Shown in pieces: positions 8,523-63,098 of a DNA stretch of 64,000 nucleotides (the stretch's first letter is position 1; every line of letters begins with the position of its first letter). Source of the stretch: Octopus bimaculoides (Eukaryota); the NCBI RefSeq assembly GCF_001194135.2, contig NC_069009.1, positions 953,450 to 1,017,449 on the forward strand, in the 5' to 3' direction. The notes beneath the pieces are model-generated. The model saw nothing but the letters and a program-made list of their open reading frames with translations, was not told where the DNA came from and did not search any database. The position numbers and the translations under genes are program-made.

Positions 8523-8539
8523 AAAAGTCCCGAAAATGA

Positions 8540-13504: not shown

Positions 13505-14863
13505 CTAATGAATGAGTCTGTGAGTAGTCAAGTGATCTATTTCAAAGAATGATTCACCACAGACATCACAACGATGTGATTTCACTCCTGAATGAACACA
13601 TTTGTGTCTACTTAAATGTCCCTTTTGAGTGAATGATTTACTGCAGATATCACAGTGATATGGCTTCTCACCTGTATGGATAAGCTTGTGTTTAGTTAAG
13701 CTAACTTTTATAGAGAATGATTTACCACAGATATCACAGTGATATGGTTTCTCTCCTGTATGAGTACGTTTATGTACAGTTACATTACTTTTTTGAGCGA
13801 ATGATTTACTACAGATATCACATTGATATGGCTTCTCTCCTGTATGAGTAAGTTTGTGTGTAGCTAACTTATCTCTCACAGAGAATAATTTACCACAGAT
13901 ATCACACTGAAAAGGTCTCTCGCCTGTATGAATAAGTTGGTGAGTAGTTAAGTCACTGTTTCGAGAGAATGATTTACTACAGATATTGCAATGATATGGT
14001 TTCTCTCCTGTATGAATACGTTTATGTACAGTTACAGCACTTCTGTGAACGAATGATTTACCACATATATCACAATCATATGGCTTCTCTCCTGTATGAG
14101 TAAGTTTGTGTGCAGCTAAGTTAACTCTCACAGAAAATGATTTACCACAGATGTCACAGTCATATGGTTTCTCTCCTGTATGAATACGTTTATGTACAGT
14201 TACAGCACTGCTTTGAGTGAATGATTTACCACAAATATCACAATGATATGGCTTCTCTCCTGTATGAGTAAGTATGTGTGTAGTTAAAGTTGCTTTTAGG
14301 GAGAATGCTTTCCCACAAGTATCACAGCAATATGGCTTCTCTCCTGTATGAATACGTATGTGTTTAGCTAAGTTAACTTTCACAGAGAATGATTTATCAC
14401 ATATATCACAATGATATGGCTTCTCTCCTGTATGAGTAAGTTTGTGTGTCGATAAATGCTGCTTTTGGGAGAATGATTTTCCACAAATATCACAGTGATG
14501 CAGCTTCTCTTCTGTATGAATACGTTTGTGAAGAGTAACTTTACTACTTTTAGAGAATGGTTTACCACAGCTATCATAATGATACAGGTTCACTCCTGAA
14601 TGAACATGTTTGTGTACAGTTAGGCTGCTTTTGTGAGTAAATGATTTACCACAGACATCACAGCGATATGGTGGCTCTCCAATATGAATGAGTTTATGAA
14701 TATCCAATGCATTATTTGTAGAGAATGATTTACCACAGATATCACAATGATATAGTTTTTGTCCCATGTGAATATTTCTGTGAATAGTTAGGTTACCTTT
14801 TTTAGAGAATGATTTTTCACAGATATCACAGTGGTATACAGATTTTCCTCTTTCTTTGGGCAT
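13505..14863 (-). CDS. Tandem C2H2 zinc-finger protein, 16 fingers (1 degenerate)
   Basis: ORF 13505-14884; first ATG 14863 (MPKERGK). The homologous 5' acceptor is visible at ~15390-15410, beyond the N gap. Confidence 0.9.
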
Positions 14864-16439
14864 CTCTGCAGGTAAAACTAACAAAACTCAAAGTTTCTCA
14901 CACAATTCCTCTTTCTGTAATTTTTTTCTTCAACAAAATGTCTGGAAATTTTCTTTCTTCTTGTTTTTATATTTTATTCCTAACAAATATTACAACTGCT
15001 ATATTATTATCAAATATAAGCTTTACTGATATCTTTAAGATGTTGCAAACGTCTTTACAAATTTATCCAAGTTTATTCAGAATTCAAATTTNNNNNNNNN
15101 NNNNNNNNNNNNNNNNNNNNNNNNNNNNNNNNNNNNNNNNNNNNNNNNNNNNNNNNNNNNNNNNNNNNNNNNNNNNNNNNNNNNNNNNNNNNNNNNNNNN
15201 NNNNNNNNNNNNNNNNNNNNNNNNNNNNNNNNNNNNNNNNNNNNNNNNNNNNNNNNNNNNNNNNNNNNNNNNNNNNNNNNNNNNNNNNNNNNNNNNNNNN
15301 NNNNNNNNNNNNNNNNNNNNNNNNNNNNNNNNNNNNNNNNNNNNNNNNNNNNNNNNNNNNNNNNNNNNNNNNNNNNNNNNNNNCTGATATTCTGAAATGA
15401 TAGAGAAACAACAGTTTAAGATAGAGTGTAGCATTGGTTATGACAAAGACTTGGTGTTCATTTATATACAACATTTATTACTAAATTTTTAACAAGGCTT
15501 CATGAAAATCAAGAGTCCATCTTATATGGACATTGTATTTGAGAGGAGTTGAAGGTCTTCAACACAATTTTTGTCCTTGAGTAGCAATTGTTATTTCCTA
15601 GAAAGTATGAAAAGTAGCTAATATCTCCTTCAAACTTTTCTTTTGTAATGATATTTATTCAAACCGCAAATAATCCCTCTAAACACATAACTATGGCACT
15701 CCCCCACTACTCTCTTGCTCGTTATCATAGATTGTTAGTCACTAAGGGATATGCCATTTTTGTCCATAGCCTTCACGAAATTCTTCATTAAATCAAACTT
15801 GATATGTTGAAAGGAAGAAGTACCTTTTTTCATGTCACCCGAAGACTTTCTTGGACACTGTGTTCACCAGGAACGAAAGTGCTCCCAGATCCGCAATCGT
15901 GAAATGTAATTACAAAAACCCTTAAATCACACAATTCACATATTTTTTTTTGTTTGCATAGTCGTATATAAATTCCCGTGTGTAGAACACAAATTCGCAA
16001 AGAATTTCTGAAAGTTTTTTTTAAAAAGAAGGCAGTTACGAGAGGTTATATGGCGTGCTTAAACCAGAATTTCGCCATTCCAATTTTTAAAGTTCGCATT
16101 TACTTTACGTTATGTGAGACCCTTACGTATATGGATTAAAACAATTTTTATCTGTTCTATAACACAAAATATACAAGTATACGAAGTTTGAAAGTGTTTC
16201 GGTACCAAAAACACGACATAAAACATAAATGAAAAGTGTTGCTCATCAATTCAGAAGGATCCACTTTGTTTACTTCCGGTTTTGAAGACAAACCTATTTA
16301 AACTAATTTTATAATAAATTTTAATTAATTCTGATATAATTAACGCGGCCTTCATTCGTTTCGGCTCGACGAAGCCAAAACAAAAAGTCGCTTGTTTCCG
16401 TGACAACTCGACAATTCACTTCGGATATCTTCGTGACCT

Positions 16440-19862: not shown

Positions 19863-20894
19863 TCACTGGTATTGTTTCTTTCTCATATGACTGCGCTTGT
19901 GAGTACTAAAGCTGCTTCTATGAGCAAATGATTTACCGCAGATATCACAATGATATGGCTTCTCACCTGTGTGAGTACGCGTGTGAGTACCAAAGCTGCT
20001 TCTATGAGCAAATGATTTACCGCAGATATCACAATGATATGGCTTCTCACCTGTGTGAGTACGCTTGTGATCAATCAAAGTACCATATCCAGAGAATGAT
20101 TTACCACAGGTATCACAGCAATATGGCTTCTCTCCTGTATGAACACGTTTGTGAATAGTTACGTGACTAGATGAAGAGAATGATTTCCCACAGATTTCAC
20201 ACTGATATGGGTCCTCGCCTGAATGAATGCCTTTATGAACAGTTAAGGCACGTCCATAATAGAATGATTTACCACAGATATCGCAATTATATGGTTTCTC
20301 TCCTGTATGAATGTATTTGTGTCTATTTAGGTAACTATTTTCATAGAATGATTTACCACAGATATCACAGCGATATGGCTTTTCTCCTGTATGAATGCGT
20401 TCGTGAGTAGTCAAATGATAAATATCATGAAATGATTTACCACAGAGGTCACAGTGTAGATATTTTCCTCTTATGTGAAGCTGTTTGTGTGTCGTTAAAT
20501 TAGAAGCTTGCGAGAATGACTTACCACAGATATCACAGAAATAGGGCGTCTCACCTGTATGAATACGTCGGTGAGTAGTCAAGTTACCTCTCCGAGTGAA
20601 CGACTTACCACAGATATCACAGTTATGTGGTTTTTCACCTGTATGAATACGTTGGTGACGGACTAAGTCATTTTTTCCATTGAATAATTTACCACAGCTA
20701 TCACAATGATATGGCTTCTCTCCCGTATGAATACGTCGGTGAGTGCCTAAGCTACCTTTCTGAGTTAATATTTTACCACAGATATCACATTCAAATGTTG
20801 TTTTGCCCTTTTCATTCTTTACATCATTAGAAAAATCAATTTTTTCAGCTTGTTTTTTACATTCATCTTCACACCTATATAATTCATTTTCCAT
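19863..20894 (-). CDS. Tandem C2H2 zinc-finger protein, 11 fingers; frame open upstream to 21020
   Basis: MENELY start, TGEKPY linkers; the last two fingers are a near-identical 84-bp duplication. Confidence 0.92.
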
Positions 20895-24643: not shown

Positions 24644-25844
<1,201 letters not shown>

Positions 25845-34487: not shown

Positions 34488-35385
34488 ATGATGGCCGTTT
34501 GGTACCTGCTCTGCTCTTTGTCTGCAATATTTTGTAAGTTTTATTTTTTTTTTATTCTATTTTTTTCCATAACTTATTTTTGTTAAGGCAAACCTACTCA
34601 GGTGCACAGAGGTCTGGAATGGGTCACTCACATAAGTTGGATTTTCTTTGTTTTGACAAGGATTTTTCCAATTTTGTTTTCACCACAGCTTTAGAAATGA
34701 TGCATTTTATTGGAAGAAATTTTTGGAAAATTTATGATTTTCCACCACAATCCAACTTATAAACTATCTACCTCATTAACAACTTATATACAGAACCTCA
34801 GGTCCCAAAACATTCCCTAGTTGATTAACAGTGAGCCATCACACCCACCCCATACAACACTAATCTTGGCATTGTTTATAAGAATCACCCACTATCTTTC
34901 AAAACCACAACCCCTCATTATTTAATAAATTCTCAGATGCAATCCTCTCATGTAAACACAGATCCTATTCATTGTTTGCTGATTATGTTAAATCTATGTA
35001 ATTCCTTGATTACGATTAACCTTAAGTTACAACTTAGTTGCACTAGTGACATATCACTTCCACTAATACCACCTCCCCCATTCTAAATATTTCCTTAAGA
35101 TTACCTTTACACATTCCTGCTACCCAGCACATACCCCTTTACAAAGGACCCCGTCCTCATACTTTGAATTCTTACCTGATCATCTTAGTACTTCCTACTC
35201 CTACTTTTACTACCAACTCCCTCTATTTACTCATACATGTCTACATACCTCAGTACTTTCATGTGCCACCGACCCATCTTCCTTTTTCAGATTTCCCCTT
35301 TGCTACACTACTAGCATCTGTAAACTTTTGTTTTCATCTTTTACAGGTTTGACAAGTGCAAACACTTATAAAATCACCCAAAGTG
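34488..35385 (+). CDS. Incomplete Ig-like family copy: leader exons join(34488..34533,35347..35385) = MMAVWYLLCSLSAIFCLTSANTYKITQSG
   Basis: Canonical AG/GT sites, phase 1, homologous to the leader exons of the two complete copies. The Ig exon is not visible (N gaps follow). Confidence 0.6.
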
Positions 35386-38123
35386 GTAAGTAAATTCACA
35401 AACCTTTTTTTTCTCCTTTTAAACTAGACACTATCTTTTCAGTTCTGTCTTCTATTTCTTTCTCTTAACTCATAGCTTTTAGTCAGTTTTGCTTTTTGGT
35501 TTCTTAAAATGTTTTTATTTTGACCATTGAGAAAGGCTAAAGAGCCAGAAACTCACATCAGGGAATGCACTGGAGCAGGGGTTTTCAACCAGGGTCATGA
35601 TGGCTTGTGGAGATTCATATAGGATGGCCACCTTCATTCTTGCCATGGATCCAACAAGCCACAGCATTGTGGTGAGCGCCATTCCATGCATTGGCAAGAC
35701 TTCTATTCCTTGATGACCTTTCTAACACCCACCACTTTACAACATGTAGTGGCTGCTTTTCTTTATTGCACCACCACTGAATTGGTTACCATGTAGCTGC
35801 GATTATGATAGTCATTCTAAATAGGATTGTGGTTATGATGTTTGTCATCATCATTCAATGTCCATGTTTCATGCAGAATTCGTTGCCCCTTTTTAATGCC
35901 AAACATTTTACAGAGTACTGGAGGCTTTTTTTACATGGCACCAACATTAGTAAGTCGCCAAGTAACTGTGAAGGCAAAGAAAGTGGAAGGAAAAAGCCCT
36001 GACTGAAGAGCATACCAGGTGTCGAGAGGTTAAAATAAGTGGGGTGGGTGTAATTGGATAGAGACATGGTTTAATCAGACATACACCCACGTCTGATGAA
36101 ACCATGTCTCAGTAAACATAAATCTCATTAAGTTCAATCTCGTTAGGTTAAGTGTAATAAGATGTTTAATTTATTTTGATAATCTATTTTGCACATTTTA
36201 CCTCTTAATTTCCATGGCAAAAATATTAACCCTTTAGCATTCAAATTACTCAGTCAAATGTAATGCTNNNNNNNNNNNNNNNNNNNNNNNNNNNNNNNNN
36301 NNNNNNNNNNNNNNNNNNNNNNNNNNNNNNNNNNNNNNNNNNNNNNNNNNNNNNNNNNNNNNNNNNNAAAAGTTTTAGATTCAGGCATGATTTTGTTGCC
36401 TCATAACTTCTAGAAAAATGGATACTTTTCAATGAAACTTTCAACAAACAATCTCTTAGATCATACACATTGAGCGTATGTAAAGATTTGTTGGAAAAAA
36501 AAATTTTCCGAGAGGAGTTTCGGAAAATTCACACGACCCGACATTTCATAACTTCTCAGAATTTTCGTAACTTTCAGGAAAATGGGTATTTTTTAAGGAA
36601 ATTTTACACAAATACCTTTCAAACAGCGTAGATGACGATTACAAAGACATCTGGGCATAACTACAGGGTTTTACCCCCTAGACTTTAGGAGGTCATAACT
36701 TTCAGAAAAATGAATATTTTTTAATGAAATTTTCTATGCATATAGTATTTTGGTAAATATGTTACTTACGTGGAAAAAATGCCATGTTCTAGAACCGCAA
36801 TTTCCGCTCTTGTCTACCTGTAATTAAAAAAACAAAAATCAAGAGATTTGGCTGCTATTTCTAGCATGTGTAGAGACCTCCTATGCTTAACTTCATGCGC
36901 AAATAACAGATTGTTCTCGTGGGTGTATACGGGGTGGAAGGGGGGAGGGTCACATGGCGGAGATGTAAACGGAACCCTACCCCGCTTTAGTTTTTTTTTT
37001 TTCTTTTTTAACAGANNNNNNNNNNNNNNNNNNNNNNNNNNNNNNNNNNNNNNNNNNNNNNNNNNNNNNNNNNNNNNNNNNNNNNNNNNNNNNNNNNNNN
37101 NNNNNNNNNNNNNNNNNNNNNNNNNNNNNNNNNNNNNNNNNNNNNNNNNNNNNNNNNNNNNNNNNNNNNNNNNNNNNNNNNNNNNNNNNNNNNNNNNNNN
37201 NNNNNNNNNNNNNNNNNNNNNNNNNNNNNNNNNNNNNNNNNNNNNNNNNNNNNNNNNNNNNNNNNNNNNNNNNNNNNNNNNNNNNNNNNNNNNNNNNNNN
37301 NNNNNNNNNNNNNNNNNNNNNNNNNNNNNNNNNNNNNNNNNNNNNNNNNNNNNNNNNNNNNNNNNNNNNNNNNNNNNNNNNNNNNNNNNNNNNNNNNNNN
37401 NNNNNNNNNNNNNNNNNNNNNNNNNNNNNNNNNNNNNNNNNNNNNNNNNNNNNNNNNNNNNNNNNNNNNNNNNNNNNNNNNNNNNNNNNNNNNNNNNNNN
37501 NNNNNNNNNNNNNNNNNNNNNNNNNNNNNNNNNNNNNNNNNNNNNNNNNNNNNNNNNNNNNNNNNNNNNNNNNNNNNNNNNNNNNNNNNNNNNNNNNNNN
37601 NNNNNNNNNNNNNNNNNNNNNNNNNNNNNNNNNNNNNNNNNNNNNNNNNNNNNNNNNNNNNNNNNNNNNNNNNNNNNNNNNNNNNNNNNNNNNNNNNNNN
37701 NNNNNNNNNNNNNNNNNNNNNNNNNNNNNNNNNNNNNNNNNNNNNNNNNNNNNNNNNNNNNNNNNNNNNNNNNNNNNNNNNNNNNNNNNNNNNNNNNNNN
37801 NNNNNNNNNNNNNNNNNNNNNNNNNNNNNNNNNNNNNNNNNNNNNNNNNNNNNNNNNNNNNNNNNNNNNNNNNNNNNNNNNNNNNNNNNNNNNNNNNNNN
37901 NNNNNNNNNNNNNNNNNNNNNNNNNNNNNNNNNNNNNNNNNNNNNNNNNNNNNNNNNNNNNNNNNNNNNNNTTATTATTATTGTGTTGTATTTTTTACAG
38001 AAACCCACCGTTTTCGTATCAGGCTTTCACCTTTTTACATACTATTGTTTGTTTGTTGTAAAATTAGTGTAACTCAAATAATTTCTGTTGTTTTTCAGTT
38101 TCAGAAAATAATTTTTACAGATC

Positions 38124-40649
38124 ATGGAAATTCTAAAGTTCTTCTGTTTGTCTGCAATATTTTGTAAGTCTTTGTCGTTCTTTTTCTTTATAATTCACTC
38201 TTATTTCTTTATTGCCCACAAGGGGCTAAACATAGAGGGGACAAACAAGGACAGACAAAGGGATTAAGTTGATTAAATCGACCCCGGTGCGTAACTGGTA
38301 CTTATTTAATCGACCCCCGAAAGGATGAAAGGCAAAGTCGACCTTGGCAGAATTTGAACTCAGCCAATGAAATAGTCATGTAGTAACGCCTTACAGTCAT
38401 TTTCCTGAAAGTCACGAGGAAACAAATCCAACTCTTGTGAATTTTCCAAAACTATTCCTCACCCTCAGAATGAATTTTTCCTCTAAAAATTGAGATGTAA
38501 TCAATCTGTACCATCTAGGGCATATTTGTAGAAAATTTCTTTAAGAAAATATCCATTTTTCAGGCACTTGTGAGTAAGCAAAATCAAGTAGGGCACACTT
38601 GTGTAGGTATGCCACTTCACTTAGAAACAAGGAATGTATAGTGACAGGAAGGGTTTCTGGCTGTAGAAGAGAAAAGACAGTCTTTGTGACATGCAAGATG
38701 AAATGGTAAATGTTAAAACAATGGCAGACATCAGCATTGTGATACAATCGCCATTCTATTGTGATCATAACCGTATTGACTCGTAGCATAGTCTTGTCAG
38801 TTTATATATATTTTTTATTGTTAATACAAAAGATGTTCATGAAATACAAGATTCAATCTTCTTGTGTATTACAGGTGTAGAACATCTTCATCAGAAATTC
38901 AATATTTAGGCTTATGTTTCACATCAATGCAGATTCATGTTGCTGTGTTTCATTCTTCATCCATCTCACCAGGTGTGAGAGGGTGGATGTGGCCAGTTTG
39001 AACATAAAACAATAATATTTGGGCCACATATGGCTTGGTTAACCCTTTGGCAATAAAATTACTGTCTAATGTACTGTTCATTTATTCACATTGTTTTGAA
39101 TTCTATCATCTGAAAATCAAAAACTTTGTTTTCATCTTTTACAGGTTTGACAAGTGCAAAAGTTTATATCACCAAAAGTGGTAAATAGATTCACAAACCA
39201 TTTTTTCTCCTTTTAAACTAGACACTATCTTTTCAGTTCTGTCTTCTAATTCTTTCTCTTAACTCAGCTTTTTTAGTCACTGTTTTACTTTTTGGTTTCT
39301 TAAAATGTTTTTATTTTGACCATTGAGAAAGGCTAAAGAGCCAGAAATACACATTGGGGAAGCACTAGAGCAGGGGGTTTCAACCGGGGTCATACACCCA
39401 TGTCTGATAAAATCATGTCCCAGTAAACATAAATCTCATTAAATTAAAACTTGTTAGGCTAAATGTAATAAGATGTTTAACTTATTTTGATAATCTATTT
39501 TGCACATTTTACCTCTTAATTTCCATGACAAAAATATTAACCCTTTAGCATTCAAATTACTCAGTCAAATGTAATGCTTATTTATTCACAATGTTTTGAA
39601 TGAATCACACATTATCTCAGCTTTGAGATTTCAATGATGTGATGCTTTATTTCCAGAATGACATTGTAGGTTAGATGGGAGAGGTCAGATATGGCTAGTT
39701 TGAACATCAGACAAGTAGAGTATTTGGGTCTGATATCGTTAGTTTAAATGCTAAAGGGTTACATTTGGATGTGAGATGAAGGCATGGCTGTGATTAGGAA
39801 CTTTTATTTCCAAGCGTATAATTTAAGGTCCAGTCCCCCTGTATGGCACCTTGTTTAAGTGTCCTCCACTATAGCCCCAGGCCAACAAAAGCCTTGTGAG
39901 TGGATTAGGTAGATAGGAGCTAAAAGGAGCCCATTGTGTGATGTGTGTATATATGGGATATTATAGCCTTGTTTGGAAACAGATGGAGGTTAGTGACAGG
40001 AAGAGTATCCTACTGTTGAGAATGAAAACTCTTATCCACGAAACATGGAACAGTGGGCATCATAATGATGCTGATTTTCTGTCTTGATGAATTTTTAGTT
40101 GAATGAATTGACCCCAGTACTTATTCTACTGGTCTCTTTTGCTGAACCACTAAGTTACTGGGACATAGACACACCAACACTAGTTGGCAAGTGGTGGCGG
40201 AGAACAAACACACATATAAATAAACAACAGGCTTCTTTCAGTTTCCATCAACCAAATCCACACACAAGGTTTTGGCTCATCTGAGGCTGTAGTAGAAGAC
40301 ACTTTCCCAAGGTACTGTGTAGTGGGACTGAACCCAGAACCATGTGATTGGGAAGCAAATTTCTTATCTGATTTCTTTATTTCAGGAAATGTTGTGCTCA
40401 ATGGAAATGTCACTCTTATGATAACAATACCAAATATGAGACGACCAGTGGTTTGGAGGTGTCACAATTATAAATATGAATGTGACAGGACGTGTGCTAA
40501 CGGCACTAACTATAAAGTTACGCAGAGTGGAAATCATTCCACTCTGTGGATTCGAAATGTGACAAAGGAATGTTTGACTTGGAGATTCGACGATGACAAC
40601 CTTCAAGGTGGAACAATTCATTTGAAGATAAACAGTAAGGAAATGATTC

Positions 40650-40681
<32 letters not shown>

Positions 40682-41969
40682 TCCTTTATTGGCCATTGAG
40701 GGTTGAGACAGTGGAAAATATTTAGGATGGTACAGTGTAGGTTTTAGCATGTAAAAAGTCATAAAATAAATGAAAGGAAGTCAAAAAAAGTAAATTCCCC
40801 AATAGAGGTGTGTACCTCTCCAATTTACAGGTACACACTGAGAGAAGGCCCATTCACTCAAGCAATGCTCACCTATCAACAAACTGCTTGGAAGGCGGCA
40901 CTTCCCTCTCCACCCATACCTATAATGGTGATACTTAAAAAAGTTAAATTAAATTTTTTTAAGAATTGAACATACAAATTTCCCAATAAGTAAGTGGTCA
41001 TATTATTTATATCCTACATCAAACTACAGTACCTTTGATTTGGCTGCCATCATTGAAAGATTGAAAATACTTCTCAAATTTTATGCACTATCTTCTATAA
41101 GTATTTAATTTTGTTCACATTCTTTTTCATGATGCGTTTGGTGTAGACACCGATCAAGTCTACAGTCAAACACTTACAAAGCTCAATTCAGTTCAATTTA
41201 AAAGCATAGATAAGCTATGCATTGTAAGCCACACCATGATTTGCAAAATAATTTATCTTACGTTATGCTTCACCCCTGATATGCCTTTTTCTTTTACTCA
41301 TATTAAAATTGCTGCCTCTAGGGCAGCGGACTTGCGGTCATAGGATCGCGGTTTCGATTCTTCTGAAGAGGAACATATAATCTTTTAGATATAGTAATCT
41401 AGGATACTGATGTGTGTTGACCCTTTTGTTATTAGATTTTTGTTGAAATACACTGCCTTTGTTTCAATTAATCTTTAAATAAAGAATTTAGTAAAATAAC
41501 TTCATCACTTCTAAGTTGCTGTTTGGAACATAAATTACTATGAAATTTTGATGGAAGCTTTAAATTTAGATCATTTTAAACCTATTGTTACTTTATTTCT
41601 GTGGAAATACACTGGCTTTGTTTCAATTAATTTTGAAAATATAAAATAATTTAGTAAAATAATTTTGTCATCATTAAACTGGTTTTTCGAACATAAATTA
41701 ACAGGAAATTTTGATGGAAGGTTTCAATTTGGATCATTTAAAAAAAAAAGAGGGCTTTGCACCATCGAAACAAGGGCAGTCTTGAGCAAGTTGGAATGCA
41801 AAGGGTATATAAATGATATGTTTTATTGTTGATCTTTGTATGTGATACAACACCAATATCTGTGGCATATGATGATATCACACTGAAATCTTTTGCAGAT
41901 GGTGGAACCAGCAGCCTCAGAACCAGCTTCATCTTTGTCATTGGGATTATAATTGCTGTCATCATTTAA
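38124..41969 (+). CDS. Predicted GPI-anchored single Ig-like-domain glycoprotein, 131 aa; join(38124..38163,39145..39180,40386..40634,41899..41969)
   Basis: All introns GT-AG and phase 1; 396 nt in frame. Signal peptide MEILKFFCLSAIFCLTSA, Ig-like exon with 4 N-glycan sequons, C-terminal NNGGTSSLRTSFIFVIGIIIAVII*. All exons are conserved in the 52155-56260 paralog. Confidence 0.82.
39541..39758. mobile_element. piggyBac-type MITE (TTAA|CCCTTTAGCATT...AATGCTAAAGGG|TTAC)
   Basis: TIRs with CCCT termini and a TTAA site. Partial copy at 36230-36267; decayed copies in the ZNF 5' regions. Confidence 0.8.
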
Positions 41970-44126
41970 ACAGTTTAAGAAATACCAGTAATAATCTCAG
42001 GTGCTAGAAGGACACTTTTTGATATTTAATCTTTTATCTTTAATCAGTTTCAGTCATTTTGCTGAGGCCATGCTAGAGCATTGTCTTGAAGGGTTTTTAG
42101 TTGAACAAACTGAAACCTGGGCCTTTTTTTTTCTAAGCCTAGAACTTATTCCATTGGTCTCTTAGGCTAAACCACTTAGTGATGGGGACACAAACACACC
42201 ATCACCAATTGTTAAGCGGTGATGGGGGATAAATACAGACGCGCAACCAACGTCTTTCAGTTTCCATCTCTCAAATTCACTCAAAAGGTTTTGGTTGGCC
42301 CAAGGCTATAGTAGAAGACACTTGCCCAATGTGGGACTGAACCCGGAACCATGTGGTTGGGAAGCAAGCTTGATTTGTTCGCCTAAAGGCAGTGTTCCAG
42401 TATTGCCGCAGTCAAATGACTGAAACAAGTAACATATTTTTAATTTCATTTATGTCTCCCCTCTCTTTCAATAAAGTCTCTTTCTTTATCCGTAGTCTCT
42501 CATTTCTCTCTCTCTCTCTTTCTACACAAAAATGAAATGTATTAGTTACCCCATTGGCACCAAAACTTCCAAAGGGAAACTGTATTTTTTTTTTCCTCTA
42601 ATTCACTTGATACCATCTATTCTGCAATTTGGGATTAAAATATCCAGTGATGTAAAATATATATAGCAGCATCATGCAGGCATAGCGTGGATTTGAACCT
42701 CAATCGCCAAATTTCACTTAACAGTTCAACAGAAATTTTCTCATGGTAAAACAATAGTTTTTCTGTGAGTGACAGCAGTTACATTTGCCAGATGCTTTTT
42801 GCTAAGCAGAATATCATTGCCACTTGGCCCTTCTAACCTCTTCTATATAACTTAAAGTGAAAGTGACAAGACAATAGACTTCTCAAACTACTCACTGTTT
42901 GGATAACAGTATGCCTCTCTTTCTCGCTATATTGTGATAGTTATAAATACTAAAACACCGTAGGAAGAAAGGGAGTTGGCAAAAACGAGATGATGCAGAA
43001 GGCGACCACAGGCAGAATCCAGTTAGTGACAACCGTGTTTGGCTTAACAAATTGTAACAACCATGGAAGTAACCAACACGGAAGTTGTCTTGTCCCATAT
43101 TCTCCTCACCGCTGTTTCATTGACAAGAACAATAAAGGTATCTTTCTATCAACTTCCTACACTTACATTCATTCTATCTTCCACTGACCCCTTTTTTAGC
43201 ATCTAGTAGGAGGCTAACATAAAAACAGCAACAACATACAAAAAAAAAAAAAACTCTCTCTGTAGTTTATATATTATACACCTGCCCGTTGCGGTATGGC
43301 ATATCTTAAAGTAATGAGAAATAAATCTGGAGTCAACATTAACTTTGTCCACTGTTCTTCTTATTTCACATCTTACAACATGCCGTTACAATTACATTAA
43401 CCAGCCTGACTGACCTTCATACGGGTGACATGTAAAAGCACCCACTACACTCTCTGAGTGGTTAGTGTTAGGAAGGGCATCCAGCTGTAGAAACTCTGCC
43501 AAATCAGATTGGAGCCTGGTGTAGCCACCTTGTCCACCAGTCCTCAGTCAAATCGTCCAACCCATGCTAGCATCGAAAGCGGACATTAAACGACGATGAT
43601 GATGATGATGATGATTACAATTGGTGACCTTCGACTACAATGAATAATTATGTCATTACAGATATTTTGTTTTAGTATTATACTTGTTGCACACACAAAT
43701 ATTTCTTTAGAAGAATTTATTATTCTTCATGTCTTCTGCCCTGACTTTGTTACCACTAAGCTTTAGTATTGTCACTGACGGCTTCAGTGTGGTTGTTGAG
43801 TGTATTCGGGCTTGTGTTAGGAGACTTTTCAAAGATTTGGGCTGTCTCTTACTTTTTATAATTGTGTGCGTTTGGAGGGTTAAATTCATATATATATATA
43901 TGACCACTTTACTGAGTGTACTGGGTACATTTTATGTAGGCATGAAAGCAACAATGAAAGATCACTGGAATGCTTTGTCTCTCATATAAATGCTCGTGTG
44001 AGTAGTTAAGCTGTTTGTAATGAGCAAATTATCTGTCACATGTCACAATGATATGGCTTCTCTCTTGTATGAAAACATTTGAGACTAGTTAAAGTGCTAA
44101 TCTTGGAAAATGATTTACCACAGGTA

Positions 44127-45317
44127 TTACAGTGATATGACTTCTGTATGAAATTGTTTGTGCCTAGTCAACAGATTATTTTGAGAAAATGATTTACCAC
44201 AGATATCACAATGATATGGCTCCTCACCTGTATGTGTACGTTTGTGAACATTTAAGTTACCAACTCCAGAGAAGGATTTACCACAGATATCACAGTGATA
44301 TGGCTTCTCTCCTGTATGAATACGCTTGTGAGTAGTTACGTTACTAGTTTCAGAGAAGGATTTACCACAGATATCACAATGATATGGCTTCTCTCCTGTA
44401 TGAATGCGTTTGTGACGAATCAAGGTATTATTTTGAGAAAACGATTTACTACAGATATCACATTGATATGGCTTTTCTCCGGTATGACTGCGTTTGTGAA
44501 TAGTTACGTGACCATTTTCAGAGAATGATTTACCACAGATATCACAGTGATATGGCTTCTCTACTGTATGAACACGCTTGTGAGTAGTCACGGTACTAGC
44601 TTCAGAGAAGGATTTACCACAGATATCACAATGATACAGCTTCTCTTTGGTATGAACATACTTGTACTTAGTTAAGTTACCAGTTTCAGGGAAGGATTTA
44701 CCACAGAAAACACACTGATATGGCTTCTCTCCTGTATGAACACGCTTGTGCTTAGTTAAGTTACCAGTTTCAGAGAAAGATTTACCACAGATATTACAGT
44801 AATATGGCTTCTCTCCTGTATGAACACGCTTGTGCTTAGTTAAATTACCAGTTTCAGAGAAGGATTTACCACAGATATCACAATGATATGGATTCTCTCC
44901 TGTATGAATACGTTTGTGACTAGTTAAGATACTATGTCTAGAGAATGATTTACCACAGATATCACAATGATATGGCTTCTCTCCTGTGTGGATGCGTTTG
45001 TGATCAGTCAAGTGATAATTTCGAGAGAAGGATTTACCACAGATATCACAGTGATATGGCTTCACGCCTGAATGAATGTATTTGTGAACAGTTAAGTTGT
45101 GTCCATAAGAGAACGACTTACCACAGATATCACAATGATATGGCTTCTCTCCTGTGTGAACACGTTGGTGAATGACTAAGTCAGCTTTCCGAGAGAATAA
45201 TTTACCACAGGTATCACAATCATATGATATTTTGCCCTTTTCATTCTTTTCCTCATCAGGAAAATCCATTTCTTCAGACTCTTTTTTTATATTCATCTTC
45301 ACTCCAATATAATTCAT
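44127..45317 (-). CDS. Tandem C2H2 zinc-finger protein, 13 fingers (1 degenerate); ancestral ATG (45324) out of frame
   Basis: TGEKPY-linked fingers; the leader matches the 24732 gene except for a +1 in an A7 run. Confidence 0.85.
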
Positions 45318-52154: not shown

Positions 52155-55100
52155 TTAAATGATGACAGCATTTATAATCCCGATGACAAAGATGAAGTGG
52201 GTTCTGAGGCCGCTGGTTCCTTGTGCACCATCTGCAAAAAAATTTCAGTGTGATATCACTATATGTCACAGATATTGGTGTCGTATCACATATAAAGATC
52301 AACAATAAAACATATCATCTATATACCCTTTTCATTCCAACTTGCTCAAGACTGTGGCCATGCTGGAGCACCGCCTTTATAGTCTAGCAAATCGACCCCA
52401 GGACTTATTCATTGTAAGCCTAGTACTTATTCTATCGGCTCACTTTTGCCGAACCGCTAAGTTACAGGGGCGTAAACACACCAGCATCGGTTGTCAAGCA
52501 ATGCTGGGGGGGGGGGCGCAAGCAGACACACAAGCACACACATACATATATATACGTATACATATACGACGGGCTTCTTCCAGTTTCCGTCTACCAAATC
52601 CAATCACAAGGCTTTGGTCGGCCCGAGGCTATAGTAGAAGACACTTGTCCAAGGTGCCACGCAGTGGGACTGAACCCGGAACCATGTGGTTGGTAAGCAA
52701 GCTACTTACCACACAGCCACTCCTGCACCTATAAGCTACTTACCACACAGCCACCCCTGGAATTATTAATATTATAAATTATTTCCTTACTGCTTATCTT
52801 CAAATCGGTTGTTCCAAAGTTGATATTGTAGTCCGCAAACATCCAGGTCAAACAATCCTCTGTTACTTTTGTTATCGAAAGAGTAGAAGTATTCCCACTC
52901 TGCATAACTTTATAGTTAGTCCCGTTAGCACATGTCCTGTCACATTCATATTTATAATTGTTGCACCTCCAAACCACTGGTCTTCGCATATTTGGTACTG
53001 TAATATTGAGGGTGGCTTCTCCATTGAGCTTAATATTTTCTGAAATAAAGAAATCAGATAAGAAATTTGCTTCCCAAAAACATGGTTCTGGGTTCAGTCC
53101 CACTGTGCAACACCTTTGCCAAGTGTTTTCTACTACAGCCTCGACTATCATAATTGCAGCTACATGGTAATCAAATGAGTGGTGGTGCAGTAAAAAAAAT
53201 GCACCCACTACACTTTGTAAAGGGGTCAGTTTTAGGAAGGTCATCAAGAAATAGGAACCTTGACAATGCATGGAATGGAGCTTGCCACAATGTTGGCTTG
53301 TTGGATCCATGGCAAGATTGAAGGTGGCCATTTTATAAGTACCCTCACACAGGCCATCTCGACCCTGGTTGAAACCCACTGCTCCAGTGCTTCCCTGGTG
53401 TGTATTTCTGGCTCTTTAACCTTTCTCAATGGTCAAGTTAAAAATTTAAAGAAACCAAAAAGCAAAATAGTGACTAAAAAAGCTATGAGTTAAGAGAAAG
53501 AAATAGAAAACAGAACTGAAAAGATAGTGTCTAGTTTAAAAAGGAGAAAAATGTTTGTGAATCTATTTACCACTTTGGATAATTTCATAAATCCCTGCAC
53601 TTGCCAAACCTGTAAAAGATGAAAACATTAAGTTTTGATTTTCAGATGATATAATTCAAAACAATGTGAATAAACAAACAGTACATTAGACAGTAATTTG
53701 ATTGCCAAAGGGTTAAGCCAGCCATATCTGGCCCAAATATTACATAGGCGCAGGAGTGGCTGTGTGGTAAGTAGATTGCTTACCAACCATATGGCTGCGG
53801 GTTCAGTCCCACTGCGTGGCACCTTGGGCCGACCAAAGCCTTGTGAGTGGATTTGGTAGACGGGAACTGAAAGAAGCCCGTCGTATATATTCAATAAACT
53901 GGGATATTATGGCAGGAAGAACATCTGATTGTATATAAAGAAAACTCTGATCACAAGTATGGAAAATTAGGTGTTCAAACAATGATGATGGTGAAAAGAT
54001 AACCCTGAAATCTTTCATATGACAAAACTGTCGCTAACATTGGTTTATCTGTTTATTTCAGGTCCAGTTGTGTTAAGAGGAAATGTCACTTTTCATACTG
54101 AAGAAATAGCCAATATGAAAAGGTCTATTATCTGGGAAAATGGTCGTTGCAGTCTCAGATATGCCAATACATGCTGCAACAATGGTAACTATGAAGTTAG
54201 CCACACTGGTAACATTTCTACTCTTTGGATCCAAAGTGTCTCTCAGGAAGATATGACTTGAGTTTTTCGAAGTGACAATCTCTGCTATGCGAAAATTACT
54301 GTGGTGACAAAAAGCAAGGAAATTACTTCTGCTAATAATAACAACAATAATTTCATCAATCCCCAAGAAGATGAAAGACAATACCACAGAACAATCAATC
54401 ATCTCTTGTATATGGATGATCTTAAAACTGTATGCTGCAAATGATAAACAAATGGAAACTTTATTACAGACAGTACATGGATTTACCAAAGAAATAAATA
54501 TGAAATCTAGCTTGGAAAAATGTACCAACGCAACCTTGAAAAGAGGAAAACTAGTTAAGAGTAGCAACATCACACTAGATAAAGCAAATGAAGTAAGAGA
54601 ATTAGACCAAAGCCTTCCCACCAGAAATACATGAAGTTAAAAAAAAAATACAAAGCCCAGTCCTGGCTAAGAAGGAACATATTCAGAGACATGACTGAGT
54701 TGGGACCTATATACACTGGAAGCTATGCCAACACTATGGAATAACAACAGAAAAAGATGTTATAAGCTCACCCCAGAAAAGGTCACAGAAAATGAGAAAG
54801 TAACCATATTCTGGGATATGTCAATATGCACAGATAGAGAATTCAAGGCCAATAGACCAGATATAGTTGTCAGAGATCACCAAGATCATCAGAAATCACC
54901 ATTGTAGACATATGTTGAGAGGAATTCTTCGGGGTTTGGAGAACTTACCTTTGGAAACATGGGTGTTTCATTCAACATCCTTAAACAACTCTTATTCAGG
55001 GACCTTTTGAGCAGGATGGGCTACTCAACCTGAAGAAAATTCTAACTGGGCCCCACTTGCAAGGTCATGCACTGTTCATCTTGATATGAGATCACCATGT

Positions 55101-56260
55101 CGTGCACATATGGTTGTGATGCAAGTGCTTGGTGTACCCTTATCAGACGGGTAGTCATGATGGGTATAATGGGCTTTGTATATTTTACCCCAGTGTCACT
55201 TTGATGGCATGCACTGCTCTCTCACTCAATAATAATAATAATAATAATGATAATCATCACTGAACAAATATTTTTATAATACTTAAGCAAAATTAAAAAT
55301 TTGTAACTTTCAGGGTTTTCTTCTGTGTTTTTTTCTTTTTTCTTTTTTTCTTTCTTTTACCTGTTTTGAATTAATAGATCTTCATAATAATCCCTGCTGA
55401 GATATATTCGTAGTTGACTGAATGGATTGGTTAGTTTCAGTCTCTAGGATCACCTGTCTATATTACAATTTATTTGTTGAACATCTGACATGTGGCGCAC
55501 TTGTGCCCTTGTGCAGACAATGTTGATTTGATGGAAGGAGGGAGTTAATGTACAACTCACACATTTGATCCCTATAAGTAAATAATTTGTGCAGGGCTTC
55601 CAGTCAAAACTGCACACTGATATGTCATCTTTGACAGCAGATTCTGTTATATCTTCTACTATATAAATGCAAGTGTATGTGGTTATGTAGCTGTGTTTAG
55701 CCCCCAAAAGGCTGATTTTGGCCATTCGTTTTTGCATTACACACTCAAAAACCATAGGGGAAACCTTTTCAGTAAAAGTTTATTTATCACTTCACGATTT
55801 GACAGAGGACACCACATAAGTTGGATTATCTCTGTTTTGATGGGTACTTTTCAACTTCAGCATTGGAGGCAGACATTAAATGATGATGATGATGATTGTG
55901 TAGATTAGGATTATATCAGAAGTTAATATGGAAACAATTTGGTTGGCATGTACATATTAGTACTGACAAATTTCAAGTTTCATCTTGTAGATATATGTGC
56001 TGTGTGTGAGCCTGCCATTTTTTTCCTTAAATAAATATTCAAAAACCTTTATTTCATTTTCATGTGTGTGGTGAAAAAACAATTTGAAAAATCCCTCTCA
56101 AAACAGAGAAAATCCAATTTATGTGGGTGACCAATTCCAGACTTCTGTTTACTTGTATAGTTATGCCTCAACAAGAATGAATTTTTAAGAAAAAAAAAAA
56201 AAAAAAAACAAACTTACAACATAATGCAGACAAACAACAGAAGAACTTTAGAATGTCCAT
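52155..56260 (-). CDS. Predicted GPI-anchored single Ig-like-domain glycoprotein, 135 aa; complement(join(52155..52231,52791..53039,53571..53609,56218..56260))
   Basis: GT-AG phase-1 introns; 408 nt in frame. MDILKFFCCLSALCCLASA|GIYEIIQSENIKLNGEATL...LKISNGAQGTSGLRTHFIFVIGIINAVII*. Coding indels versus the paralog are multiples of 3. Confidence 0.82.
52350..52730 (-). mobile_element. Composite tRNA-derived SINE (AGGTGCAGGAGTGGCTGTGTGGTAAG...GGTTCAGTCCC head) in intron 3 of the minus-strand Ig-like gene
   Basis: More than 10 related copies in the window (e.g. 12855-13015, 53745-53890, 57300-57692, 59820-59990). Confidence 0.8.
54062..54313 (+). pseudogene. Diverged Ig-like exon with in-frame TGA (54259-54261) at a conserved Trp and a GC donor, nested antisense in intron 1 of the 52155-56260 gene
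   Basis: GPVVLRGNVTF..ANMKRSIIW...YEVSHTGNISTLWIQSVSQEDMT*VF aligns with both intact exons; acceptor TTTATTTCAG is conserved. Confidence 0.75.
54345..55248 (+). mobile_element. Internally deleted RLE-type non-LTR retrotransposon relic (R4/Dong-like), flanked by (AAT)n
   Basis: NHLLYMDDLK (RT), LAKKEHIQRHD, and ENEKVTIFWDMSICTDREFKANRPDIVV (restriction-like endonuclease). Whether 54900-55248 belongs to the same element is inferred. Confidence 0.7.
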
Positions 56261-57299: not shown

Positions 57300-57692
57300 T
57301 CTTTTACTTGTTTCAGTCATTTGACTGTGGCCATGCTGGAGCACCACCTTTAGTCGAGAAAATCGACCCCAGGACTTACACTTTGTAAGCCTAGTACTTA
57401 TTCTATCGGTCTCTTTTTGCCAAACCGCTAAGTTACGGGGACGTAAACACACCAGCATCAGTTGTCAAGCGATGGTGGGGGAGACAAACATACAAACATA
57501 TACACACACATATATATATACATATATACGACGGGTTTCTTTCAGTTTCCGTCTACCAAATCCACTCACAAGGCTTTGGTCGGCCCGAGGCTATAGTAGA
57601 AGACACTTGCCAAAGGTGCCACGCAGTGGGACTGAACTCGGAACCATGTGGTTTGTAAGCAAGCTAATTACCACACGGCCACTCCTGCACCT
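57300..57692 (-). mobile_element. Composite SINE, same as 52350-52730
   Basis: Near-identical sequence. Confidence 0.8.
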
Positions 57693-59400: not shown

Positions 59401-62133
59401 CTAGAGAGAGAGAGAATCAACAGAAGATGAGATTCAGAGACGCTCAATACAGGCTATTCCACAATTAACTATCTATTTCAATGAAATCAAGCAAATTTTT
59501 AAAGAACTGACAAAATTTTATGCTTATTACTTATGGTACCAACGCAAATTTTACATCACAACTTTATTGAAAATTTTCAACATGTATTCCTGAAAAATTC
59601 AAATCTATCATCTGCATTGCTAAACACATTTGGAAATATTTCAGGAGTTACCTTCTGCATGGCTAACTAAATGCATTCTTTAAGTTCAGCTGAACTATTG
59701 TTTCATCCGGGAGACGGAAATAGAGAAAATGACTGCAGGGAAATTGAGAAAAGCTGTCACGAAGAGATAAGGAATGAAAATAAAATTATTAACAAAATTA
59801 TAAATTTAATCACTTAACATAGGCACAGGAGTGGCTGTGTATTAAATAGCTTGTTTACCAACCACCTGGTTCCGGGTTCTTTTCCCATTGTGTGGTACCT
59901 CGGGAAAGTGTCTTCTACTATAGCCTCAGGCTGACCAAAGCTTTGTGTGTGAATTTGGTAGAGGGAAACTGAAAGAAGCCCATCATATATATCTATATAT
60001 ATATGCATGTGTGTGTATATGTTTGTGTGTCTGTGTTTGTTCCCCCAACATCACTTGACAACCGATGGTGGTGCGTTGATGTCCCTGTAACTTAGCGGTT
60101 TGGCAAAAGAGACCGATAGAATAAGTCCTGGGGTCAAAACCACGATCCTATGACCGCAAGTCCACTGCCCTAACCACTGGGCCATTGCGCCTCCACAAAG
60201 GATGAACTAATTATTAAGTAAACATATATTTCAACAAAACATGCACTAAATTGAATTTGATAGGTCTTATAGAGCCTAAACTTAGCATGAAATTATTGCA
60301 TTGATAATGTTGTTTATTCCGTCTCACTACTGTAAACAACATGTGGAGAACCACTACGCAAACTGGGCAGATATTCTTGTACATGTAAATTGTGTTTTTC
60401 TTTGAGAAATATTGGTAAAATTCTGCCAATAAGAAGAGACCATTAAGATTTTATTGAAATAGTGTCATATCTCAGAATTTCATGATTTATTTACCTTCAC
60501 ATCTATTAAAAATGTGCCAAAACTCAAGTTTTTGTGGCCTGCTGTTTTGAATTTACCCAAGTCTGTGTCGTATCTTGCTCGACACTGTTATGTCCTGTAT
60601 TATAACGGCGTAATTTGCCATCAGCCTGACTGGCCTAAACTGCATGACTGGCTGCAAATCGCATTCCACACATTGTGGCTGTCTACTATTTTTTAAGATT
60701 TTTTTTTTTCTACACACAGTATCATTATTTTATTTTCATTCTCCATTTTTTTTCTGCACATAATCATTATTATTTTTCTGTCGTTTTCATTTTCTATATA
60801 GGACAAAAAAAATTTTTTTTCTTTCAATTTCTTATCATAGAGCAATTACCATAATTTTTTTTCAACACTTAAGTATTATGCAGAATAACAGTATGAAACA
60901 CTGCAAAATCAACCTGTGACCCCTTTTGTAACGCTTTATCCCATTGTCTCTTCGAGTTCTACTTATTCTATTTTAAGCAAAACAAAAGAGACACTTCGGA
61001 TAAAAGGTCATTGTGAGATCACAGGCTGTTCGAGGAAAGAGTTTAAACAAAGACATGAAAATAACAATAATAAGAACACTCAGAGAGCACAAACCTCCAC
61101 CTGTAGTACGTAGTTTGCTTACGAACCACATGGTTCCGGGTTCAGTCACACACACACACACACAATGTGCACAAGCATTACAGTGTTGTCCTCCACTTTA
61201 AACTATTAATATGCCAGCTGCTGCTACTCTTGCCATGTTTTTCTGACCCAATAAAAGCTATAGATTATATTCTGTTTTTTTCCAAAGTTTTTTATTACAC
61301 TGTCTCACTAAGAGAAATTTAATACTAACTGAACCAATTACATTTCATGACTCATATACACACACACACACACACATACACAAAGTGTGCACTAGCATTA
61401 GATTGTTTAAATCCACTTTATACTACGAACTGTCAGCTGCTGCATTTAAAGTCTTGCCTTGTATTTGCCTTGTGTCAATAAAAGTTGTGTTGTGTTGGCA
61501 CTCCGTCGCTTATGACGTCGAGGGTTCCAGTTGAGCCGATCAATGGAATTATATATACTGTGTGGCAAAAAGTGAAAATAAAGTGTTCATTTTTTTTTCC
61601 TTTACAACTGAAAGTGTTGGAGATTTCCAAAGAGGTTTGTTTTCTTTCTACAAAATGAAACTTGAAAGTGCATTTCTAAACAATATGAGAACCGAAATAA
61701 CAGCCAAATCTCCAACAAACTCTCTTGATACACGCCCACACATATCTGTATGTGATGTACATACAACATAGAAGTTGGCACTCCGTCGCTTACGACGACG
61801 AGGGTTCCAGTTGATCCGATCAACGGAACAGCCTGCTCGTGAAATTAACGTGCAAGTGGCTGAGCTCTCCACAGACACGTGTACCCTTAACGTAGTTCTC
61901 GGGGATATTNNNNNNNNNNNNNNNNNNNNNNNNNNNNNNNNNNNNNNNNNNNNNNNNNNNNNNNNNNNNNNNNNNNNNNNNNNNNNNNNNNNNNNNNNNN
62001 NNNNNNNNNNNNNNNNNNNNNNNNNNNNNNNNNNNNNNNNNNNNNNNNNNNNNNNNNNNNNNNNNNNNNNNNNNNNNNNNNNNNNNNNNNNNNNNNNNNN
62101 NNNNNNNNNNNNNNNNNNNNNNNNNNNNNNNNN

Positions 62134-62557: not shown

Positions 62558-63098
62558 CTTTGTATTATATTGTGGTAGTATGACAAAATAAGGTGTCCCC
62601 AGAAATAATTCATATCTACATACAATCTGCCAGGAATGTGTTTGATATGAAACATTAAGATATCCAAAGGATTGGGCTGTTAACCGCTAAATTCTTATCA
62701 TCATTGGTAGCTTGCCTCACCAAGGTGTCAAGTGATGCCTGTGAGGGCACTTGACTATGTTTTTCTCTTTCTTCTCTTCTCTTCCCCCTATTCCTTTTTT
62801 TTTCTGCTTTCCTTTTCTATTTTTTTTTTGTCTTTCTTTTGTAAAATTTTATATTATGGAAGAATCATGACTATCGTTGAAGGTTTGTATTTTAATTAGA
62901 TAAATAAGTTAAAAAAATTAAGCAATGTGTTTGTGGAGCATATGCAGTCGTAGCTGAGTGGTAAGAAGCTTGCTTCTCAACCACATGGTTCCAGGTTCAG
63001 TCCCACTGTGTAACACTTAGGCAAGTGTCGTTTACTATAGCCTCAAGCCGACCATAACCTTGTGAGTGGATTTGGTAGAGGGAATTTGAAAGAACCCG

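Follow-up and report, generated by a model that had tools for sequence, protein, structure and literature searches.

An octopus exon for a predicted I-set-type immunoglobulin-like domain with non-canonical cysteines, and its octopod gene family

Introduction

Animal surface recognition relies on immunoglobulin (Ig) domains more than on any other building block, and the disulfide between their B and F strands is the textbook signature of the fold. A stretch of 64,000 nucleotides (nt) of the Octopus bimaculoides genome (contig NC_069009.1, positions 953,450 to 1,017,449, forward strand; hereafter the window, numbered from its first letter) raises the question of what kind of domain is encoded by an exon that carries the motifs of an Ig domain and four cysteines, none of them at the two canonical positions. 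The exon lies at 40386-40634 on the plus strand, in a gene that we call gene 1 (LOC106883299). A sequence-only reading, made from the letters of the window, had proposed an Ig-like domain without the canonical B-F disulfide, belonging either to relatives of Sgp-1, a squid glycoprotein, or to a new subtype of the immunoglobulin superfamily (IgSF). At a probability of roughly 0.78, we conclude that the exon at 40386-40634 encodes an I-set-type domain with two non-canonical cysteine pairs, part of a tiny surface glycoprotein that is probably lipid-anchored, and that it belongs to a family of about 40-55 such exons so far seen only in octopods.

The domain exon

Exon 3 of gene 1 spans 249 nt between an upstream ...tttatttcAG and a downstream GTaagg, with phase-1 introns on both sides, and its translation reads (G)NVVLNGNVTLMITIPNMRRPVVWRCHNYKYECDRTCANGTNYKVTQSGNHSTLWIRNVTKECLTWRFDDDNLQGGTIHLKIN. 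The motifs on which the proposal had been built (GNVTL, VVW, STLWIRNV and ECLTW) are all found in this translation, as are the cysteines at WRC, ECDRTC and ECLTW, and the same four cysteines occur in a second gene of the window, gene 2 (LOC106883582), where the last motif reads DCLTW. The exon peptide matches the RefSeq proteins of both loci (P0001, 134 aa, for LOC106883299 and P0002, 135 aa, for LOC106883582) as well as a relative from O. sinensis. Gene models were obtained by mapping the RefSeq proteins back onto the window with tblastn and splicing the coding exons in silico; the spliced exons equal P0001 and P0002 letter for letter, giving each gene four coding exons separated by phase-1 introns throughout (Table 1).

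Predicted fold of the encoded domain

Structures were predicted with AlphaFold, to which an alignment of 24-25 paralogous exons was supplied. The full-length model exceeds a predicted local distance difference test score (pLDDT) of 90 over residues 31-110 and contains eight strands, while the exon-only model reaches a pLDDT of 96.2 and a predicted template modelling score (pTM) of 0.84. The strands are predicted at residues 24-28 (A), 37-42 (B), 50-54 (C), 57-61 (C'), 71-76 (D), 79-84 (E), 93-97 (F) and 103-107 (G), in a two-sheet Greek-key beta-sandwich of seven or eight strands with the order ABED / A'GFCC', and neither the full-length nor the domain-only model has a C'' strand. Two Foldseek searches against the PDB, of which we considered the top 50 matches each, listed Ig domains exclusively; no FN3 or cadherin domain was among these listed matches. 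I-set domains superimposed best in terms of root-mean-square deviation (rmsd), namely titin I27 (template modelling score, TM, 0.72; 2.6 Å), an obscurin Ig domain (TM 0.71; 2.5 Å), titin M1 (TM 0.70; 3.0 Å) and NCAM2 Ig1 (TM 0.70; 3.0 Å), whereas antibody V domains gave TM 0.57-0.71 at 4.0-5.6 Å (mostly 4.4-5), with many gaps. A V-set classification was rejected on this rmsd and on the absence of a predicted C'' strand.

The I-set resemblance extends to the level of sequence profiles. Comparing the family with ten lamprey obscurin I-set domains, hhalign returned a probability of 82% (P = 1e-5) over 61 columns, with T-L-M-I41 falling on T-L-x-Cys, W52 on the invariant Trp, and YECDRT forming a six-residue insert. 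The B-strand cysteine position, described earlier as occupied by Ile or Met, thus belongs to Ile41 in both copies, Met40 being only its neighbour. Additionally, domain 3 of P0067, a sister family member from O. sinensis, scores 35.5 bits in one stretch against Pfam I-set (PF07679) and passes its gathering cut-off of 23.7 bits. Conserved and variable columns alternate in every strand, and the conserved set (L39, I41, V50, W52, C54, Y59, C61, V73, L82, I84, W94, F96, I106 and L108) faces inward; W52 is invariant in alignment A1 and nearly so over 67 domains (entropy 0.11). A single exon with phase-1 introns encodes the domain, as is the case for the 27 paralogous exons with defined limits; such a lone phase 1-1 exon is a hallmark of Ig domains.

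The F strand comprises T93-W94-R95-F96-D97, with W94 and F96 pointing inward, and the motif reads ECLTWRF. Because the obscurin alignment ends at T93, Phe96 is placed by an alignment with repeats of the abalone genus Haliotis and by the inward-facing pattern of the model, and its assignment to the F strand is less direct than that of Ile41 to the B strand. As modelled, the domain is an I-set-type IgSF domain with Ile41 and Phe96 at the canonical cysteine positions. Both halves of the earlier claim are borne out: the Ig-like character by the AlphaFold models, the exclusively Ig matches listed by Foldseek, the obscurin alignment and the Pfam pass of P0067, and the loss of the canonical disulfide by the two residues in its place.

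Known I-set domains (titin I27 and M1, obscurin Ig, twitchin Ig26, NCAM2 Ig1 and IgLON5/NEGR1) share with the octopus domain the predicted A-B-C-C'-D-E-F-G topology, the invariant C-strand Trp and the single phase 1-1 exon, and their motif xYxIxxDGxxxxLxIxxV is resembled by the octopus D-E hairpin motif (Y/F)xVxQxGNxSTLxIxxV. Unlike them, the octopus domain has no cysteine at the B and F positions, reads ECLTWRF instead of DxGxYxC in the F strand, and carries both a six-residue insert with CxxxC after strand C' and a second non-canonical cysteine pair. It also differs from titin and obscurin in belonging to a single-domain protein that would be extracellular and glycosylated. The B-F cysteines are typical of Ig domains and not obligatory, as domain 1 of CD2 lacks the pair. 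Domain 1 of CD2, CD58 and CD48 offers an analogy, being an extracellular Ig domain without the B-F disulfide, with GPI-anchored (glycosylphosphatidylinositol-anchored) as well as transmembrane members, that works in cell-cell recognition; it is, however, V-set, is followed by a C2 domain, and has neither CxxxC nor a disulfide from the C strand to the E-F turn.

A fixed and an interchangeable cysteine pair

Cysteines were tabulated over 67 distinct domains (26 genomic exons plus the domains of database proteins). Cys61 is present in all 67 and Cys65 in 65, the other two having a cysteine at position 66. Cys54 and Cys91 occur together in 29 domains, are both missing from 32, and stand alone in six, a co-variation (Fisher p = 2e-12 over 67 related domains) whose p-value covers few independent events because the copies are related. 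One copy without Cys54 has a cysteine at position 56, two residues on and on the same strand face. The four cysteines had been described as conserved; this is so family-wide for Cys61 and Cys65, whereas Cys54 and Cys91 are kept in one subfamily and jointly lost elsewhere. A third subfamily lacks Cys54 and Cys91 and has co-occurring Cys97 and Cys102 (in 14 and 15 domains), and a fourth pattern, S54/F91, has the CxxxC pair alone.

From this distribution, we infer a fixed disulfide staple, Cys61-Cys65, and a second disulfide that is switchable between subfamilies (Cys54-Cys91, Cys97-Cys102 or none). The CxxxC pair would tie the C'-D crossover to the end of strand C', and in the window proteins Cys54-Cys91 would bridge the E-F turn and the bottom of strand C. 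Cys54 lies two residues past the core Trp, and Cys91 sits in the E-F turn, aligned with the Asp of the Haliotis DxGxW motif. In antibody V domains, the residues at the equivalent positions, Kabat Arg38 and Asp86 of VH, make a conserved contact, so that a Cys54-Cys91 disulfide is geometrically reasonable. The sandwich core would hold Ile41 and Phe96 in place of the B-F disulfide, with the two other disulfides holding the fold.

Predicted precursor processing and probable membrane anchor

The product of gene 1 would be a 134-aa precursor with a signal peptide predicted, by inspection under the -3/-1 rule, to be cut after Ala20. The mature domain, of about 92 residues, would fold as an I-set-type Ig-like beta-sandwich and carries four N-glycosylation sequons (N35, N67, N78 and N86). 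Exon 4 encodes the tail NGGTSSLRTSFIFVIGIIIAVII-stop, in which a small-residue omega region and a short polar spacer lead to a hydrophobic run that ends the protein; small residues and such a spacer ahead of a terminal hydrophobic run are the usual layout of a GPI signal. Both window proteins terminate inside the hydrophobic run, and paralogues with K/R-rich tails past it are true transmembrane forms. Read by inspection, the gene 1 tail is probably a GPI-attachment-type signal: the C-terminal hydrophobic peptide would be swapped for a GPI anchor near N112-G114, and the product would be a very small glycoprotein in the outer leaflet of the cell membrane.

An octopod family and its nearest matches

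Three six-frame searches of the genome, one for each subfamily representative, converged on about 55 loci (at least 54 matches to related exons), some 40 with an open frame and some 15 with stop codons, so that the exon is no chance reading frame. About half lie on the contig of the window, C29 (at 0.38-0.41 Mb, 0.99-1.17 Mb and 9.48 Mb), and smaller groups are on the contigs C5, C2, C19 and C30. Among 30 loci examined, 27 have an AG/GT exon of 80-83 codons in phase 1-1, which is open in 26 of the 27. When 1.84 billion representative proteins were searched with the family profile, 43 hits were obtained; the clear, nameable family members among them come only from O. bimaculoides, O. sinensis, O. 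vulgaris and Argonauta hians, all labelled "uncharacterized" in the database, with one taken from a transcriptome run of an octopus, and no squid or cuttlefish protein was among the 43. Architectures within the family comprise a single domain with a GPI-type tail, a single domain with a transmembrane segment and a basic tail, and chains of two to five domains built from the same kind of phase 1-1 exon, in which an exon-2-like segment (…SANIYKITQSG…) provides the linker and strand A. Six members of the type that lacks Cys54 and Cys91 and reads 'W..EFS.W' (P0014, P0018, P0022, P0027, P0029 and P0030, on C5, C28 and C30) carry a second, unrelated cysteine-rich module, KPKI..C.Y...A.CSLP.T.I.CF..., ahead of the transmembrane segment, and this module has no Pfam match.

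The remaining profile hits are repeat proteins of Haliotis rufescens and H. cracherodii and obscurin- and hemicentin-like proteins of vertebrates. Their whole-protein E-values (1e-13 for obscurin, 6e-17 for Haliotis) were not accepted at face value, as a local hmmsearch showed them to be sums of weak repeats, and we therefore take these hits as support, not proof. The Haliotis proteins (H. rufescens LOC124119024 and LOC124122840; H. cracherodii XP_071094808 and XP_071095869) are the nearest non-octopod sequences. Like the octopus domain, their Ig-like repeats lack the B and F cysteines and have a CxxxC after strand C' (TCNPSCSP), and they share with the family STLTIHSV and a Trp that replaces the F-strand Tyr (DAGTW). 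The octopus family aligned with these repeats in hhalign at 83% probability (P = 9e-6), and Pfam I-set scores 56.8 bits summed over them. They differ in belonging to multi-repeat, mucin-like transmembrane proteins, in keeping the DxG of the F-strand motif, and in having a cysteine at both domain ends (CPGG...VCQL) and no Cys54/Cys91 pair. Since a single Haliotis repeat reaches just 13-17 bits, homology with the octopus family is probable, not proven. The terminal cysteines of the Haliotis domains (P0028, P0043, P0045 and P0046) could form a staple between strands A and G, which would be another non-canonical closure, with a parallel in the N-to-C terminal disulfide of Thy-1.

Overall, the family is distinct in its loss of the canonical disulfide, its fixed CxxxC, its interchangeable second disulfide and its octopod-specific expansion, and it is apparently undescribed; a literature search for an IgSF expansion in octopus turned up no account of it.

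Constraint and divergence

Genes 1 and 2 differ by a nonsynonymous divergence (dN) of 0.175 and a synonymous divergence (dS) of 0.58, giving a dN/dS of 0.30. Every core residue, cysteine and splice site is kept in both, so that the genes are constrained and presumably functional. Furthermore, a contig from an octopus transcriptome (RNA-seq) encodes a complete spliced family member, P0016. The domain exons of the two genes are 72% identical in protein and 79.1% identical in nucleotides, the latter against 89% in the immediate intron flanks (Fisher p = 0.015; p = 6e-4 when all aligned intron sequence is taken), and identity reaches 88-93% around exons 2 and 4. The paralogue pairs L003-L006 (exon 73.5% vs flanks 89-90%, p = 3e-5) and L021-L028 (80% vs 88-93%, p = 0.003) show a similar difference, and three other pairs show no faster exon divergence. 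Synonymous divergence between genes 1 and 2, at 0.58, is several times their intron divergence. Faster divergence of the exon may reflect diversifying selection, exon-limited gene conversion among paralogues or homogenisation of the introns, all of which fit. Positive selection is not claimed, as dN/dS is below 1, a value that results from dS being inflated relative to the introns as well.

In the Cys54-Cys91 subfamily, the variable columns are mostly at outward-facing strand positions, and the apex, consisting of the B-C loop (P-N-M-x-R-P) and the F-G loop (D-x-N), is nearly fixed. The likely, though putative, function is cell-surface recognition or adhesion; the protein would act by direct binding through its variable sheet faces, with a conserved apex common to the family.

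Relation to Thy-1 and Sgp-1

The octopus proteins share an overall design with Thy-1 (CD90): a signal peptide is followed by a single Ig-like domain of roughly 100 residues, which in octopus has several predicted N-glycans, and the C-terminus has the layout of a GPI signal. The Thy-1 domain is V-like and contains the canonical disulfide plus a second one that joins the N- and C-terminal ends. Thy-1 thus keeps the canonical disulfide on a V-type fold, in contrast to the I-set-like octopus domain without B and F cysteines, and is a single-copy gene, as opposed to a large, fast-diverging family. Aligned with mature human Thy-1, for which an unverified sequence was used, the family showed no similarity in hhalign (probability 0.1%, E = 0.46), in the alignment that had been suggested as a check. 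The likeness to Thy-1 and V domains that had been brought up holds for architecture alone, the fold being nearest to I-set and without a C'' strand.

Squid Sgp-1 is reportedly a small GPI-anchored glycoprotein of the cephalopod brain that is said to resemble Thy-1. The title of the paper on it likens Sgp-1 to Thy-1 (Williams, Tse and Gagnon 1988, Immunogenetics 27:265, cited in PMC2189447). The evidence on a relationship between Sgp-1 and the octopus genes is indirect and, with no squid protein in the 43 profile hits, leans against it. Of the two options that had been offered, a new IgSF subtype is the better.

Weighing the alternatives

Several observations count against the interpretation of the exon as the I-set-type domain of an anchored surface glycoprotein. 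The window proteins taken singly stay under every Pfam threshold (12.8-13.5 bits for I-set, E = 0.075-0.13), a Pfam scan of the exon peptides and 25 family members gave no match above threshold, and the family profile found no match among all PDB chain sequences, even at E = 10. Scores per domain to the octopus profile are 13-17 bits for a Haliotis repeat and 0-6 bits for obscurin, near-identical repeats having been summed in the totals. The co-variation of Cys54 and Cys91 stems from a small number of ancestral changes and not from 67 independent ones, the GPI anchor was assigned by eye, and the putative function of the window proteins is pure inference. The failure of single proteins to pass any Ig profile, the empty PDB search and the low per-domain scores of obscurin would all suit a convergent beta-sandwich outside the IgSF whose motif likeness is coincidental. 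Against it stand the listed Foldseek matches, all of them Ig domains with no FN3 or cadherin, the hhalign result that brings the invariant Trp and the B-strand Cys position into line with those of I-set domains, a sister domain (P0067) above the Pfam I-set threshold, and the single phase 1-1 exon. We therefore give convergence very little credence. An orthology with squid Sgp-1, which would make the octopus genes V-type GPI-anchored neural glycoproteins and kin of Thy-1, draws on the shared architecture (one Ig-like domain of about 90-110 residues between a signal peptide and a GPI-type tail, with several N-glycans), on the V domains (VL, VHH and vNAR) among the Foldseek matches listed, and on the Thy-1 similarity asserted in the title of the Sgp-1 paper. 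It is nevertheless improbable considering the much better superposition on I-set than on V domains (rmsd 2.5-3.0 Å vs 4.4-5 Å), the C'' strand that is not predicted, the hhalign probability of 0.1% with the unverified Thy-1 sequence, and the 43 profile hits, which include no squid or cuttlefish protein and whose nameable members all come from Octopus or Argonauta.

The remaining alternatives concern the anchor and the state of the genes. A tail-less type I membrane protein, or a shed or secreted one, would account for a C-terminal run, FIFVIGIIIAVII, that at 13 residues could cross part of the bilayer, and would agree with the many paralogues that are plainly transmembrane and have basic cytoplasmic tails (P0007, P0025 and P0030); moreover, the GPI layout of the window proteins comes from inspection. 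However, both proteins stop exactly at the hydrophobic run without any stop-transfer charges, small residues (N-G-G, S-S) precede it, as does a short polar spacer, and 13 residues are short for a stable transmembrane helix, which renders these forms unlikely, though the likeliest of the alternatives considered here. Finally, the window copies might be decaying duplicates or gene-prediction artefacts without function, given a dead third copy alongside, the roughly 15 genomic matches with stop codons and an exon that diverges faster than its intron flanks. Against this stand the open frames, splice sites, signal peptide, tail, core residues and all four cysteines kept in both genes, a dN/dS of 0.30 and the spliced family transcript in octopus RNA-seq, and we consider decay or artefact highly improbable. 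A functional gene for an I-set-type surface glycoprotein, probably GPI-anchored, remains our preferred reading.

Implications

On one scaffold, the Ig signature has been lost, a CxxxC staple fixed and a second disulfide apparently swapped among sister subfamilies, making the family a natural experiment in how the Ig fold is stabilised. Its members have no Pfam annotation and are labelled "uncharacterized", so that counts of cephalopod IgSF genes that go by domain will miss them. If expressed in neurons or haemocytes, the family could be a new lineage-specific recognition repertoire beside the protocadherins, C2H2 zinc fingers and G-protein-coupled receptors (GPCRs) already known to be expanded in octopus. 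A bolder proposal, against which we would still bet and which is offered tentatively, is that octopods alone possess a hitherto undescribed repertoire of miniature Ig-like molecules at the cell surface, its 40-55 or so domain exons lying in tandem clusters within zinc-finger arrays. In this repertoire, the domain exon would be under diversifying pressure, and the stabilising disulfide would have arisen anew at least three times on a single scaffold. If true, the repertoire could serve as an octopus code of cell identity or non-self recognition, in parallel to the protocadherin expansion but built from single I-set domains.

Gene structure and genomic surroundings

Table 1 Features of the window. 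Amino acids in brackets are encoded by codons split between exons; the slash marks the predicted signal-peptide cleavage site.
Feature	Positions	Strand	Product or remark
Gene 1, coding exon 1	34488-34533	+	MMAVWYLLCSLSAIF + 1 base; first part of signal peptide
Gene 1, coding exon 2	35347-35385	+	(C)LTSA/NTYKITQS(G); phase 1-1; signal-peptide end, cleavage site, strand A
Gene 1, alternative or duplicated leader exon 1'	38124-38163	+	MEILKFFCLSAIF + 1 base
Gene 1, alternative or duplicated leader exon 2'	39145-39180	+	(C)LTSAKVYITKS(G); AG/GT, phase 1-1
Dispersed repeat	40113-40366; relatives ~42138-42367, 52419-52708, 57390-57662, 59851-60137, 62962-63097		'...ggttctgggttcagtccc...' head on minus strand
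Gene 1, coding exon 3	40386-40634	+	Ig-like domain of I-set type (predicted); strands A'/B to G, residues 29-112
Gene 1, coding exon 4	41899-41969	+	(N)GGTSSLRTSFIFVIGIIIAVII, stop; tail
Gene 2, coding exon 4	52155-52231	-	(N)GAQGTSGLRTHFIFVIGIINAVII, stop; GPI-type tail
Gene 2, coding exon 3	52791-53039	-	paralogous Ig-like domain; same four cysteines (DCLTW)
Gene 2, coding exon 2	53571-53609	-	(C)LASAGIYEIIQS(E)
Dead third domain exon	54062-54313	+	within gene 2 intron 1, opposite strand; resembles the Cys97/Cys102 subfamily
Gene 2, coding exon 1	56218-56260	-	MDILKFFCCLSALC + 1 base
Long C2H2 zinc-finger open reading frames (n = 6)	3366-4811; 8456-9886; 13410-14881; 19866-20858; 24644-25760; 44009-45290	+; -; -; -; -; -	

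In gene 1, a splice acceptor directly precedes the ATG of exon 1, so that a 5' untranslated exon lies upstream. A second leader module, exons 1' and 2', which looks intact, is located between exons 2 and 3; the surroundings of exon 2' are 90% identical to the exon-2 region, and splicing 1' and 2' to exons 3 and 4 yields an open frame of 131 aa. The module may be either an alternative 5' end or the leftover of a unit that has lost its domain exon, and RefSeq gives isoforms. Runs of N at 36268-36367 and 37016-37971 mask part of this interval. An (AAT)10 microsatellite occupies 40652-40681, 17 nt past the exon-3 donor. Database models of several paralogues, including P0009, P0021 and P0033, run on through the corresponding intron to a terminal '...NNNNNNSF', and these endings are mis-annotations.

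Gene 2 is inverted relative to gene 1. The dead exon in its first intron has a TGA (54259-54261) in place of the near-invariant F-strand Trp of the family (W94), a degraded ECDxTC motif and a GC instead of a GT donor, and its best O. sinensis counterpart, P0042, is degraded too. Both genes are embedded in an octopus zinc-finger array, with one of the six zinc-finger reading frames between them. In O. sinensis, the gene model P0026 ('zinc finger protein 239-like') joins zinc-finger repeats to an Ig-like domain of the family, a fusion that is probably a prediction artefact. The dispersed repeat looks like a tRNA-derived short interspersed nuclear element (SINE) and stops about 20 nt ahead of the exon-3 acceptor of gene 1; as the same SINE-like element precedes exon 3 in gene 2 and in several paralogues, it was already present in their common ancestor.

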